A DNA stretch of 64,000 nt from Octopus sinensis. Lineage: Eukaryota. This document shows, one piece after another, positions 251 to 53,100 of the stretch. The translations under genes were made by a program, and so were the position numbers. Location: contig NC_043014.1 of the NCBI RefSeq assembly GCF_006345805.1, forward strand, positions 5,518,001 to 5,582,000. The letters run 5' to 3'. How positions within the stretch are numbered: the stretch's first letter is position 1; each line of letters opens with the position of its first letter. Below the pieces are notes generated by a model. The model was not told the origin of the DNA, did no database searches, and was given only the letters and a program-made list of their open reading frames with translations.

Positions 251-2159
251 GACCCGGTCCTGGATCCCTGTATACCCGGTGGGGTAGAACAAAATGTCCA
301 CGTAATTCCAGTCTGGTATACGATGGTTAGTATATTTTGTTTCTAATCTCTCTCTCTATTTCTTTCTCTCTCTCTCTCTCTCACTTTCTCTTCCTCTCTC
401 CTCCCTCCTTCTTTCTGATCTACACAAACGTTTTTCCTATTATAGTATATCACATTTTAAACGGCGATTATAGATTCTCTTGAGTTTACACAAAACTACT
501 TTCTCCGTTGAATTTATTTGGTCATAGCCGAAGTATAAATGGCGTCAAGAATGATCACACCAACAGGATATCATCTAAAGTACCCCCTTGAAACCAAACA
601 CAAAATATAGTTACCTAAGGACTATATGCATTAACTACGCACTATTCCACCACTTAATCACGCTAGTGCCCCATGGTAAGGCAATTCTGAGCTTTCCACT
701 CAGAAGACACTATTTTCCACCACTTCCCCATCAACTTTTCTTTCTTTATACGAGATTTGTTTTTGCTTGAAATACGATGGAACAGATTTTACCCGTCTAT
801 AACCGAACTCTTAACGGTTTCCTTAAAGGTTTCCCAATTCAGCTTAAACTGAACCTTACAATCCTTTCTCCACTCACTTTCCTGAAGACGTAAAATAACC
901 CCAGTGATGAAGCAAATAAAGCCAACGTGACCACAACGTGTATCTTCACGTGACCTGTCCACGACTAGCCGAGAGTTTTAGCTACTCTGTGCAGGATGTT
1001 CTGTTAATTAACATATAACTACCCATCGACTGTCAATACTCTCCACCTCACCGTGTTCTTCTATTTTATATTGGCTAAAAATTCCTTGTATCATTCTTCT
1101 ATATTATCTTCGTTAAAATTTGAACAAAATCGTCTTTTCCATTTTAGAGGAAATGCGTGACGTAACGGCCTTCCCTTCACACTCTTTTGACATCTGCACA
1201 CAACCATCTACAGCCATGTATCTAGACATATTCATAAATATTACCTACACAAACCCGTTGGCGTACACCTACAACATATATACATATAAATCATAGACAC
1301 GTACAGTTCTTAACTCATACACAAACATTCATTGAGCAACACAGCTTACACTCGCATCGATACTAGTTTGTATACACGAAACCTACACACGTAAACATAG
1401 TGAATGTCCAAACACATAGACACACGCACACGCGAACACACATAGACACAAAGACACACACACACACACACACATACACACACATAAACTCAATCACATA
1501 CACATTTAGACACACACACACAAACTCGGATGTGTGTCTATTTATAATCGCAAATTTTAAAATTGAAAGTTCCTTTTCAAGGATTTCTTTTAATCCAAGT
1601 TTTTCTTATTTCACTTTACTTAATATTTTATTTATTTGATATTTTCTTACCAATTCTAGGTGTGGTTGGTGGATCACCTTTTAACGAAACAGGCGGCGGA
1701 AGTAATCTCTTATGTCTACCTAACGACCCCATTTTAGCCAATCACACTACAAATTTTGAAAACTTTGCTCACATATATGGCAGTGAATATCAAACATCAA
1801 ATTCCTATGCGAAAAATCACTTTTCTTTTGCTAACGCTGAATCACTTTTTGATCACAACGTTCCGTGTGCTGTCTGTTTGACACGACAACCTGCTGTTGT
1901 TATGATGTTACCAGCCAGGACAAAGTGTTACGCTGGTTGGACGATTGAGTATTCAGGATATTTGATGACCCAGTATCATAATAATAAAGGCAGAATTGAA
2001 TATGTGTGTGTGGACCATGCACCAGAAGCTGATCCAGCTGGTTACAGAAACGAGAATGGAGCTTTATTATATTTTGTGGAGGGAATTTGTGGTTCATTGC
2101 CATGTCCACCGTATGTCTATCGTCGCATGTTAACCTGCGTTGTGTGCAGTAAATATTGA
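251..2159 (+). CDS. Paralog A (5'-partial): short-chain collagen C4-like / spongin short-chain collagen-related NC1-like domain protein; exon 3 = 251-325, exon 4 = 1660-2159
   Basis: Exon 3 (cacag|GACCC...GATG|gttagt, 75 nt, phase 1-1) encodes [24 protein letters not shown]. It splices in frame to ctag|GTGTGGTTGGT ([22 protein letters not shown]...VPCAVC...YVCVD...CGSLPCPPY...LTCVVCSKY*). The Y-x-RWG-x-x-x-CP and GGG-x-N-x-LCLP motifs and the Cys pattern are those of this family (recalled, not searched). Confidence 0.85.
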
Positions 2160-2451
2160 AGGGAATATAGTTGAATTTGCTTCTCTATGAAAACTTATGT
2201 TAACCAATTACAAGACATAATATAATATCATAAAACAATATAGACATTTTAAATTCTGTTTGATAATATTTTATCGAAGTTATATAAATCGTTAAAATAC
2301 TCTGCGCTACTAATTAACAGAAAAATATTATAATGGAGAGAAAATCGGTGCCCGAGAATGTGAGAATTATGCTTATAGAACAATGCAAAGCTGAGTGAAT
2401 AATTCTAGATAAACATTGTATAAGGATCAGTTCATAAAACTAAAATGTGGA

Positions 2452-50100: not shown

Positions 50101-53100
50101 GACGTAAAATAACCCCAGTGATGCAGCAATTTAACCCAACGTGACCATAACGCGTATCTTCACGTGACCTGTTCTCGACTAGCCGAGAGTTTTAGCTACT
50201 CTGTGCAGGATGTTCTGTTAAATAACTTTTAACTACCCATCGACTGTCAATACTCTGCACCTCAACGTGTTCTTCTATTTTATATTGGCTAAAAATTCCT
50301 TGCATCGTTCTTTAATTTTATCTCCGTTAAAACTTGAACAAAATCGTCTTTTCCATTTTAGAGGAAATGCGTGACGTAACGGCCTTCCCTTCGCACTCTT
50401 TTGACATCTGCACACAACCATCTACAGCCATGTATCTAGACATATTCATAAATATTACCTACACAAACACGTTGGCGTACACCTACAACATATATACATA
50501 TAAATCATAGACACGTACAGTTCTTAACTCATACACAAACATTCATTGAGCAACACAGCTTACACTCGCATCGATACTAGTTTGTATACACAAAACCTAC
50601 ACACGTAAACATAGTGAATGTTCAAACATATAGACACACGCACACGCGCACACACAGGGACACAAAGTCACACAAACACACACACATAAACTCAATCACA
50701 CACGCACACATACACACACACAGTCGTATGTGTGTCTTTTTATAATCGCCAATTTAAAATTGAAAGTTCCTTTTCAAGGATTTCTTTTAATCCGCGTTTT
50801 TCTTATTTCACTTTACTTAATATTTTATTTATTTGATATGTTCTTACCAATTCTAGGTGTGGTTGGTGGAACAGCGCATAACGCAACAGGCGGCGGAAGT
50901 AATCTCTTGTGTCTACCTAACGACCCCATTTGGGCCAATTACACTGGCGTTTTTGTAGGTGGTGGGAGTCACATATATGGCAGTGAATATCAAACATCAA
51001 ATTCCTATTTGAAAGAACACTTTTCTTTTGCTAACGCTGAATCACTTTCTGATCACAACGTTCCGTGCGCTGTCTGTTATGATGTTACCAGCCAGGACAC
51101 AGTGTTACCCTGGTTGGACAGCTGAGTATTCAGGATATTTGATGTCCAGTTATCACGGACATAAGGGTAGACATGAATATGTGTGTGTGGACTATGCACC
51201 AGAAGCTGATCCAGCAGGTTACAGAAACGAAAATGTAGCTTTATTATATTTTGCGAAGGGAGTTTGTGGTTTATTGCCATGTCCACCGTATGTCTATGGT
51301 CGCGAATTAACCTGCGTTGTGTGCAGTAAATATTGAAGGGAATATAGTTGAATTTGCTTCTCTATGAAAACTTATGTTAACCAATTACAAGACATAATAT
51401 AATATCATAAAACAATATAGACATTTTAAATTCTGTTTGATAATATTTTATCGAAGTTATATAAAACTTTAGAATACTCTGCGCTACTAGTTAACAGAAA
51501 AATATTATAATGGGGAGAAAATCGGCACCAGAGAATGTGAGAATTATGCTTATAGAACATTGCAAAGCGGAGTGAATAATTCTAGATAAACATTGTATAA
51601 GGATCAGTTCATAAAACTAAAATGTGGAAATAAAATTGTATTTCGTTTAACTGTATTTTGTGTTCTGTCTTAAATATCAATAAACCCCATTTGAAGTAAT
51701 ATCATAGAAATATATGATGGTTCCATCATTTTTGAGAGGAATGTAAGTAGTAATCCTCTCACCACCTATTTGGTTTTCACCTGTACCTATACAACCTCGT
51801 GGCCCCGCCACAAGATTAGTTGACATCCTCATAACCGGAACACGTAACCCTCACACCTTGCACCATTTCCTAAACACTGATGCACAACAATCAGGAATGG
51901 AATCACCTGGGAGTATCGAATACGAATAATTCTCTCACTGAAAAGCAGAAAAATGGTAAATTGGAGCAAAGATTTGCTTTACAACACTTACCACATATAT
52001 AGACAGCAAAAGGACGTAGAAACATAATGAGGCTAAGCAAAGTTACTCTGTGTAAACTGTGTGATATGTTGAGACTGTTACACCACATCCAATAAGAAAC
52101 ATCACTATGTGTTAGTGTAGAATATTCCTTAGATTAAAGAGAAGAAGATGGATATTTGGGAGACACAACGTCTTTCATGCAAGTAAGTGAGTGCCATAAG
52201 CTTGCTATTAAGAAAATGCATGTATTTAGACATTTATAATAGGAATCAACTTTAAATGTATACATGTGTGTGTGCTTAACCCAATGAACCTTTTGCAAAA
52301 TTCAGACTGAGAATCGTAGCTACGTTCGAGTGGCACAGAGTGCGTTCTGTATCAATAAATATTTCTGCGATATGATATTTTAGATGAGCTCAACCGTCTA
52401 TTTATTTGTTTAATACTATTATACACTCGACGTATTTACTCCCGTCCTAACATGGACAAATGGCATGCATCTAATCAAATCTTAAGTTTCCCTGCTGGAA
52501 TGTACACACATGTTCAGACTCGCCCGGCTCCACACACTCTGACAACCGTATTGCTTTTATAGCGAAGTAACTGTTTCGATGTAACATTAAGATAGTTGTA
52601 CTCTCAGAATCGAGGGTCCTGATGACGGCCAGTTAAAAGATATTTGGATACACTTTATAACATGCCGGCTGGAAATATCATCATTGGGTGAGACAAGCTG
52701 ACACTGAATCAGCTTCACTGACTGACAGGTGGCGGTCGTTTAGAGAATGCGCGGGTTAAAACTACGCTCCTTCACTAGTCAGTTAAGGTGAGACTGTTTC
52801 ACGTGACAACTTGCTGGGGTTGCCTGCTGGAGCCTTGCGGCAGGTATTTAAAGGGAAGGATTTGACAAGTCAGTCAGTCATCGGCTGACACTCGCTGACG
52901 ATACATCGAAGAGGCCAGGGAACAGAGGAAAAGAGAAGAAAGAAGACATGCACCCAATACCAGAGCTGAAGACACCTCCGAAAAGGGGGCCACGCCACGT
53001 CAAAACGGTAGAGGAGTAGGGGCCGAAAGCGGACGTGGTTCCTCCGGATGATGCCTTGAGCTGACTGGATACTATAAAGGAGCTGTTGTGGTAGCAGACC

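Follow-up and report, generated by a model that had tools for sequence, protein, structure and literature searches.

A large tandem array of collagen-less NC1-like genes in Octopus sinensis, with variation limited to a few loops of the domain

We have analysed a 64,000-nucleotide (nt) stretch of the Octopus sinensis genome (hereafter the window; G000:C18:5518001-5582000) and find that it is a small part of a very large tandem array, with four and a half units of one four-exon gene: copies A to D and the start of a fifth, E. The encoded domain resembles the NC1 domain of collagen IV in its fold, and its amino-acid variation is limited to a few loops at equivalent positions of the two half-domains. 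Our preferred reading, to which we give a confidence only slightly above even, is that this is a large, recombining, collagen-less NC1-like array whose products are anchored, oligomeric ectodomains with distal loops that form a variable recognition surface. An initial annotation of the window had described the copies as tandem paralogs with discrete hypervariable patches; the tandem arrangement is borne out, and the remaining claims are taken up with the evidence that bears on them.

Results

Hypervariable patches in exon 4

The four open reading frames (ORFs) singled out initially are the last exons of copies A to D, each with an AG acceptor, and all 16 of the patch peptides quoted for them were located there, including the additional codon in patch 2 of D. 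Their positions in the window are as follows.

Copy A exon 4: 1660..2159, plus strand; NC1-like domain, stop codon included
Copy A patches 1-4: 1668-1691, 1740-1772, 1791-1820, 1968-1997, plus strand
Copy B exon 4: 11580..12079, plus strand; with exons 1-3 makes a 256-residue (aa) ORF
Copy B patches 1-4: 11588-11611, 11660-11692, 11711-11740, 11888-11917, plus strand
Copy C exon 4: 34978..35477, plus strand
Copy C patches 1-4: 34986-35009, 35058-35090, 35109-35135, 35283-35312, plus strand
Copy D exon 4: 50857..51336, plus strand; pseudogene as assembled
Copy D patches 1-4: 50865-50888, 50937-50972, 50991-51020, 51145-51174, plus strand

Among A-D, exon 4 diverges pairwise by 9.8-12.2%, concentrated in the four patches, and the 1.1-kb 3' flank by 4.6-6.4%. 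The flanks are indeed less divergent than exon 4, but at ~94-95% identity they are not close to identical, as they had been called. For intron 3 the values are 4.9-6.6% within A, B and D, against ~11% wherever C is one of the pair. The other exons behave as first described, in that exon 2 is the same in B, C and D (52/52 nt), exon 1 varies at 4-6 residues and exon 3 at 1-4 nt.

The central claim, that the coding patches diverge more than the non-coding DNA adjoining them, holds in close pairs by a factor of 3.4-5.5. For A-B the difference is 0.291 in the patches vs 0.054 in non-coding DNA (Fisher p = 6e-15), for B-L002 0.111 vs 0.022, and for L003-L014 0.263 vs 0.048. Among nine members of the local subfamily, pairs differ on average by 0.144, 0.312, 0.237 and 0.238 in patches 1 to 4, by 0.043-0.058 in the scaffold codons between the patches and by 0.10-0.17 in the 2.4 kb of non-coding DNA alongside. 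That the patches exceed non-coding DNA in divergence is real and lies far beyond chance.

From the genome, 90 exon-4 copies were retrieved, of which 86 are intact and 83 unique. The high-entropy columns among these 83 paralogs coincide with the four patches, and this amounts to independent confirmation, as 80 of these sequences lie outside the A-D set from which the patches had been drawn. Minor variable sites were found at columns 62-66, 90, 93, 132/134, 142-144, 155 and 157. The patches had been proposed to be loops, and in the predicted structure 30 of the 34 variable columns (those with at least 1 bit of entropy) are neither strand nor helix, vs 74 of 131 conserved columns (p = 5.6e-4; secondary structure from the pLDDT 90.8 model described below). 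When the two domain halves are aligned with HHalign, patch 1 falls on patch 4, patch 2 on residues 150-160, patch 3 on 164-170, and residues 84-89 on 175-180. Patches 2 and 3 are thereby paired with minor variable sites 132-134, 142-144 and 155, so that by the half-domain symmetry the minor sites mirror the major patches.

An NC1-like fold and a possible docking face

An AlphaFold2 model of the B domain has a predicted local distance difference test score (pLDDT) of 90.8 and a predicted template modelling score (pTM) of 0.88. A Foldseek search of the PDB with this model returned collagen IV NC1 at all of ranks 1-35 (E 4.6e-5 to 3e-2; probability 1.00 for the top 30), and the initial designation of the domain as NC1-like is thus upheld at the level of fold, although not by sequence profile (see below). 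HHalign was used in local mode, the -glob option having given a meaningless end-to-end alignment that was discarded, and aligned the family profile with seven NC1 sequences, verified against or taken from PDB alignments, over 176 columns (E = 1.6e-4, probability 50%); the alignment is anchored on a common CAVC motif and Cys framework. The two halves of the domain are themselves homologous (N half, 1-98, vs C half, 99-189; HHalign probability 95.2%, E = 2.9e-8, 88 columns).

In collagen IV, Met-93 and Lys-211 form a cross-link over the trimer-trimer interface. The same interface is chloride-dependent and involves loop 74-78, with Arg-76 and Asp-78, together with Glu-175, Arg-179, Asn-187 and Tyr-189 (Pedchenko et al. 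2019, PMC6527180). In both of our HHalign runs, one against seven NC1 sequences and one against two, the core of patch 2 (B residues 53-57, TGEAT) aligns to alpha1 74-78 (ASRND), Phe-80, directly after patch 3, aligns to Met-93, and Tyr-177 (column 155) aligns to Lys-211. Residues 154-156 (columns 132-134) were aligned to alpha1 187-189 in the seven-sequence run and to 177-179 in the two-sequence run. This low-confidence mapping, with patches 2 and 3 on the trimer-trimer face, suggests that the variable loops line the stalk-distal face that docks the second trimer in collagen IV.

Family membership and protein architecture

The domain has 1565 homologs at E <= 1e-3, which carry the NCBI name 'short-chain collagen C4-like' and range from sponge to amphioxus (octopods, bivalves, annelids, brachiopods, amphioxus, octocorals and the sponge Amphimedon). 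Identity to sponge, octocoral, crinoid and amphioxus members is 45-52% at E about 1e-50, and the Amphimedon short-chain collagen C4-like protein (P0063) matches 98% of the query at 51% identity (E = 8.5e-52). Judged by this similarity, the domain belongs to the spongin short-chain collagen family. Members of that family have a short collagenous domain and an NC1 domain that has 7 Cys in common with collagen IV and 3 of its own and is devoid of the HSQ motif (Exposito 1991 and Aouacheria 2006, as cited in Fidler et al. 2017, PMC5395295). The 10-Cys scaffold initially reported is present, with 1 Cys in exon 3 and 9 in exon 4, but copy D is frameshifted and does not hold it intact. In a 68-member family alignment C14, C42, C93, C96, C113, C140, C183 and C186 are invariant, and C167 and C172 are conserved in >= 90%. 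No HSQ motif occurs in the A-C sequences.

No collagen-type Gly-X-Y run was found in any frame of the window, the few 3-repeat matches being low-complexity or non-coding. The longest Gly-X-Y run is 0 in the octopus proteins and 6-24 repeats in the sponge, cnidarian, crinoid and amphioxus members, with 13-24 in the sponge, crinoid and amphioxus ones; the Pfam Collagen family matches 16 of 68 relatives and not the query. By sequence, then, the octopus proteins are not true collagens, notwithstanding their spongin-type family, and a reading of them as such was ruled out by the missing Gly-X-Y repeats. Similar cases are seen in other molluscs. Unionid bivalve relatives (P0042-P0053) are without Gly-X-Y and have a similar hydrophobic anchor with an RRRR furin-like site, while oyster P0117 and chiton P0069, also without Gly-X-Y, have a signal peptide and a coiled coil. 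With several mollusc members thus affected, loss of the collagen helix seems common in molluscs.

The octopus proteins begin with 13 mostly basic residues followed by ~20-22 hydrophobic residues (Kyte-Doolittle mean 2.1-2.4 for the 19-mer from residue 15, after K/R residues), a charged linker of ~35 residues and one spongin-type NC1-like domain with 10 Cys. The hydrophobic segment is a putative type II signal anchor, and the proteins are probably membrane-anchored; the sponge, cnidarian, crinoid and amphioxus relatives have a signal peptide and Gly-X-Y in place of the octopus-type anchor. An N-x-T sequon (NYT) at columns 28-30 (B 11660-11668), directly before patch 2, is found in 82 of 83 copies, and a patch 1 sequon (NET) is limited to the subfamily of the window. 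Both sequons fit passage through the secretory pathway.

A reading along the lines of the initial annotation takes the array for a pattern-recognition repertoire (lectin-like, immune or chemosensory), secreted or at the cell surface. Its loops would bind non-self ligands, much as is the case for the C1q-domain proteins without collagen that have expanded in bivalves, or for the FREPs of snails. A large tandem family with variation focused in loops, the fold of an oligomerising head domain, and the N-x-T sequon beside patch 2, which fits an extracellular location, would all suit such a repertoire. Transcripts named 'short-chain collagen C4-like' also occur in titles or abstracts of stress and immune expression papers on oyster and sea star. 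We nevertheless consider it improbable: no known carbohydrate- or ligand-binding motif was recognized, Pfam lectin families gave no match, the aligned surface of collagen IV is an NC1-NC1 protein interface and not a ligand pocket, and the signal of selection is weak.

Selection and recombination

The scaffold of Cys and beta-strands is clearly under purifying selection. Its ratio of nonsynonymous to synonymous substitution (dN/dS, Nei-Gojobori method, NG86) is 0.27-0.46. The patches have a dN/dS of 1.28 in A-C, where patch 2 alone reaches 2.5. Individual codons were examined with a grid modelled on fixed effects likelihood (FEL) and fast unconstrained Bayesian approximation (FUBAR), using the GY94-F3x4 model and fixed IQ-TREE branch lengths; this is an approximation of our own. 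A single tree gave 10 positive sites. Because the approximately unbiased (AU) test described below found conflicting trees, the site test was repeated with segment-specific trees, upon which columns 32, 47 and 48 dropped out and 155 came in. With these trees, the nonsynonymous rate (beta) exceeds the synonymous rate (alpha) at p < 0.05 in 8 of 168 codons (columns 8, 38, 90, 93, 107, 132, 142 and 155), with p = 1.4e-4 for column 90, 0.003 for column 8 and 0.011 for column 93, and 38 sites are negatively selected. A few sites may be positively selected, and the patches are on average relaxed to near-neutral.

Exon 4 is a mosaic. Its 5' part (columns 1-67) and its 3' part (columns 68-168) each reject the maximum-likelihood (ML) tree of the other in the AU test (difference in log-likelihood 853 and 546, p <= 3e-5), and nearest neighbours differ between patches and scaffold. 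Patch 1 of A is the same as that of L006, its patch 3 is 1 nt from that of L004, and patch 4 of C matches the distant copy L018 at 30/30 nt. B and E are exactly alike in patches 1 and 2 and differ in patch 4. For patches 1, 3 and 4, the variants of the window copies are found in other copies at a distance of 0-4 nt, whereas patch 2 variants in this subfamily are nearly all private; a search of the whole genome for a donor of patch 2 of A found none within 3 mismatches, the sequence itself alone being matched. If change has truly been accelerated in any patch, patch 2 is the likeliest. Units of the array are duplicated, decay (D, and perhaps E) and frequently recombine or undergo gene conversion with one another, and in this way the array grows and turns over.

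A number of results weigh against a recognition surface kept variable by selection on an NC1 docking face. In the Foldseek alignments, the template modelling score (TM-score) is 0.42-0.49 and the root-mean-square deviation 8-12 A. The Pfam C4 family (PF01413) matches neither the query nor 68 relatives, even at E <= 1-10, and neither phmmer nor a profile hmmsearch of the PDB matched an NC1 chain, so that NC1 homology rests on the fold search and HHalign. The interface mapping comes from HHalign at 44-50% probability with low confidence in the loop columns, and is therefore a lead and not a result. Outside A-C the patch-wide dN/dS is not above 1, being 0.72 in the 80 other paralogs, and 25 phylogenetically independent sister pairs give pN/pS (nonsynonymous over synonymous differences per site) of 0.76 in the patches and 0.38 in the scaffold. 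In these pairs, the patches also have about twice as many synonymous differences per site (0.111 vs 0.059 elsewhere). The NG86 estimate of patch dS is partly a path artefact in multi-hit or unalignable codons and was checked with the sister pairs and with codon pairs for the same amino acid, where synonymous divergence is 0.156 in the patches vs 0.098. Raised synonymous divergence in the patches fits the import of old variation, not new adaptive change. In the site test, Bonferroni correction leaves column 90 alone, and recombination makes the underlying trees unreliable. Likely O. vulgaris / O. sinensis orthologues have too few differences to separate constraint from drift. Finally, copy number is likely inflated in part by haplotigs or mis-joins (see below). 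The diversifying selection proposed initially is hence supported in part: the patches outdiverge non-coding DNA and eight sites are nominally positive, while selection for diversity across the patches as a whole is not proven. Of the two things that were to count together against it, dN/dS at the patches is at or below 1, and intronic divergence is not equally high.

These results lend themselves to a neutral explanation, in which the loops are unconstrained parts of a structural or secreted matrix protein whose array has grown for dosage and evolves in concert. Conversion limited to the exon would shuffle old, near-neutral variants while duplication of whole units keeps the flanks young, and no selection would be needed. 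Given the mosaic sharing of patches and the conflicting trees, exon-limited conversion could indeed yield much of the excess of patches over flanks without adaptive substitutions. The patch ratios of 0.72-0.76, the raised synonymous divergence, the strong recombination signal and the recurrence of patch 1, 3 and 4 variants in other copies all fit, as does the sister pair L010/L015, which differs almost solely by a swapped patch 3 cassette. The relatives in other phyla are collagens of the extracellular matrix, and a family member was found in ink, a secreted product (PMC10142993). Columns 90, 8 and 93, by contrast, have beta > alpha at a low synonymous rate, and the private patch 2 variants, with that of A lacking a donor in the genome, also speak against this explanation. 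Moreover, the variable positions lie in pseudo-symmetric loops that align to a known protein-protein interface and not in all loops, and a long hydrophobic anchor would be odd in a bulk matrix protein. We regard the neutral explanation as possible but, on balance, rather unlikely, and continue to prefer a variable recognition surface.

Size of the array

A six-frame search of the whole genome with the B domain gave at least 150 scored exon-4 matches, from 469 first-look candidates. Of these 150, 116 lie at 3.67-6.53 Mb (~2.9 Mb) of contig C18 and the other 34 on small contigs that may be haplotigs; 134 are full-length without an in-frame stop, 9 have in-frame stops and 7 are truncated. Exon-1 matches likewise number at least 150 scored, from 202 candidates. 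The window's own subfamily comprises seventeen of them, 88-100% identical to the query, at 5.42-5.58 Mb (plus strand) and 5.86-5.91 Mb (minus strand); the remaining matches among those listed have 57-65% identity. Related proteins are grouped on single large contigs in two other species, O. vulgaris and O. bimaculoides, and are also present in Argonauta.

Some copies are identical or nearly so. L069 (C18:4715222, plus strand) equals L070 (C18:5116389, minus strand), ~400 kb away and inverted, and further identical or near-identical exon-4 copies are L051/L045, L036 = L037 and L074 = L075, some of them on small unplaced contigs. Such copies point to recent inverted segmental duplication, haplotigs or a mis-join, so that raw copy counts are somewhat inflated.

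It could be argued that the array consists of assembly duplicates or decaying pseudogenes and that the patches are alignment noise. The frameshift in D, a 1-nt deletion in E, the 16 stop-bearing or truncated matches counted above, three copy pairs with identical coding sequence, some on small contigs, and chimeric RefSeq models could be cited in favour of this. The 83 distinct intact exon-4 sequences, the scaffold clearly under purifying selection, the conserved splice sites and full ORFs, the related arrays on single large contigs in two other octopuses and the peptide evidence for a family member (PMC10142993) largely refute it, and we have rejected it as very improbable.

In the literature searched, which is incomplete, we found no description of an expansion of this family in octopus or cephalopods; the sole octopus mention there is the family-member peptide in the O. 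vulgaris ink proteome (PMC10142993). The array would rank among the largest in an octopus genome and be similar in size to the expansions of protocadherins and zinc fingers, on which discussion of cephalopod genomes mostly centres.

Layout of the units in the window

The window is ~36% G+C, rich in microsatellite-like low-complexity DNA and clearly eukaryotic. Repeat analysis of the window gave a same-strand tandem unit with spacings of 9.9, 23.4, 15.9 and 13.6 kb. Each unit has 4 exons over 7-14 kb and a product of 256 aa. Exons beyond exon 4 were mapped via RefSeq relatives with GT-AG borders required; in B and C, canonical GT-AG exons join into clean 256-aa ORFs. In addition to the exons given above, the following were mapped.

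Copy A exon 1: G000:C18:5512080-5512223, 5.9 kb upstream of the window; A exons 1-2 are outside the window
Copy A exon 3: 251..325, plus strand; 75 nt
Copy B exon 1: 5203..5346, plus strand; start codon, then a short basic N-terminus and 20-22 hydrophobic residues (putative type II signal anchor)
Copy B exon 2: 9418..9469, plus strand; 52-nt linker, same in B, C and D
Copy B exon 3: 10200..10274, plus strand; NC1-like domain begins, carries first Cys
Copy C exon 1: 21598..21741, plus strand
Copy C exon 2: 27593..27644, plus strand
Orphan exon-3-like copy in C intron 2: 30416..30490, plus strand; ends LVYDS
Orphan exon-2-like copy in C intron 2: 32108..32159, plus strand; AG/GT splice sites
Copy C exon 3: 33723..33797, plus strand
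Copy D exon 1: 38477..38620, plus strand
Copy D exon 2: 46758..46809, plus strand
Copy D exon 3: 49468..49542, plus strand; G-to-V and P-to-T changes
Copy E exon 1: 57781..57924, plus strand
Copy E exon 2: 62199..62250, plus strand; 1 nt apart from B, C and D
Copy E exon 3: 63018..63092, plus strand
Copy E exon 4 (locus L009 1438-1932): G000:C18:5582405-5582899, ~400 nt beyond the window end

Exon 4 of D carries a 23-nt deletion at 51074/51075, with CTGT..TGTT microhomology on its flanks, that shifts the frame after VPCAVC; D is consequently not an intact 10-Cys copy, and its patch 4 is readable only in the shifted frame. The RefSeq model P0001 (LOC115221573, 310 aa) is a chimera in which the 5' half of D exon 4 is followed by two pieces of E, namely its exon 2 and the 3' part of its exon 4, and this joining of D to the next unit lets the model bypass the D frameshift. 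Exon 4 of E lacks one nucleotide of an A-run (GGGCAAAT to GGGCAAT), which is either a real frameshift or a homopolymer assembly error; apart from this deletion it is the same as B through patches 1 and 2, with its main difference in patch 4.

The exon 3-4 product of C is 100% identical to RefSeq P0003 (Octopus sinensis short-chain collagen C4-like isoform X3), in which exon 1 of copy A (100% match) is joined to C exons 3-4 (window 33723-35477) with all of B skipped. As exon phases are common to all units, read-through with exon skipping would keep the frame, and the A-C joint may be inter-unit splicing or a gene-model artefact; P0003 was looked up in assemblies for transcript evidence, with no match. 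The 300-301-aa isoforms of sister units (P0004, P0007) include an exon-3-like and an exon-2-like exon as an extra linker, the former read in another frame via an upstream AG. The equivalent pair in C intron 2 has intact splice signals. With their cross-unit chimeras and many unannotated copies, the RefSeq models here need revision whether the loops are selected or neutral.

Transposon debris lies between units at 17824-19296 (minus strand), 19172-19462 (minus strand), 42779-43408 (minus strand) and 43319-43948 (plus strand), and explains why B and C are spaced further apart. Among it are a 490-aa ORF whose YVDD motif resembles that of reverse transcriptases and whose tail is GIY-YIG-like, two 209-aa GIY-YIG-like ORFs inverted relative to each other, and a mariner-like fragment. 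A Pfam search of the transposon-like ORFs gave GIY-YIG alone, at E = 0.009, under the cut-off.

Discussion

The model that we favour runs as follows. The hydrophobic segment would act as a type II anchor and hold the NC1-like domain outside the cell on a short stalk, from which the ectodomain may possibly be shed. The domain would oligomerise, as that of collagen IV does, with its variable loops on the stalk-distal face, where collagen IV docks a second trimer; in that position they could make up a variable surface that recognizes either other NC1-like domains or an external ligand. Diversity would come mainly from the shuffling of loop variants between paralogs, with some new substitutions (patch 2), and would be kept by weak to moderate diversifying selection at a few sites.

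A bolder version, which we think improbable, is that the octopod NC1 docking module serves as a membrane-anchored combinatorial cell-surface code, in which ~150-200 type II-anchored proteins trimerise and, via hypervariable loops on the face used for trimer-trimer docking in collagen IV, make paralog-specific trans contacts between cells. If true, octopuses would have in such a code another large array for self-recognition in addition to their protocadherins, and inter-unit splicing, hinted at by the RefSeq chimeras, might add combinations to it.

Spongin-type NC1 proteins are usually seen as a minor, ancient, structural branch of the collagen IV lineage with a handful of copies. In the octopus array the collagen helix is gone from the module, an apparent membrane anchor has been added, and amplification has led to >100 tandem genes that differ almost solely in loops. 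Should the loops set binding specificity, a domain for basement-membrane assembly would have given rise to a recognition repertoire of a new kind. Should they merely be unconstrained, the array is still a clean natural system for birth-and-death evolution and short-tract gene conversion.

Comparison with known systems

Collagen IV NC1 (PDB 1LI1, 1M3D, 5NAY, 6MPX) and the octopus domain have in common the fold class, two homologous halves, the CAVC motif, an aligned Cys framework and an N-terminus attached to a stalk. The octopus domain differs in length (189 residues vs ~229) and in having 10 Cys and not 12. It has Phe and Tyr where Met-93 and Lys-211 align, so that no sulfilimine cross-link is expected, and hypervariable patch 2 replaces the Arg-76/Asp-78 switch loop.

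The spongin short-chain collagens have a homologous C-terminal domain that, as in the octopus proteins, is shorter than collagen IV NC1 and has the 10-Cys pattern and no HSQ. Unlike them, the octopus proteins have no Gly-X-Y domain, of which GPG alone remains, and a long internal hydrophobic segment appears to replace the signal peptide. At least 116-150 tandem copies with loop-focused variation are a further difference.

Like diversifying recognition families, the octopus array is large and tandem, with variation in discrete loops of a conserved scaffold. The clustered protocadherins of vertebrates, and their octopus expansion, form same-strand tandem arrays of single-pass membrane proteins that evolve by duplication and gene conversion, and they too set variable extracellular recognition parts on a conserved frame. 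Their fold is unrelated, however, their membrane topology is opposite to that of the putative type II anchor here, and the octopus NC1-like units each have their own four exons with no shared constant exons.

In the C1qDC expansions of bivalves, an oligomerising collagen-family head domain without a collagen stalk occurs in hundreds of copies with loop-focused variation. In both cases a head domain freed from its collagen stalk has been amplified in a mollusc and varies in its loops. The C1qDC proteins have the C1q/TNF jelly-roll in place of the NC1 fold, and are secreted with signal peptides and have experimentally supported microbe binding.

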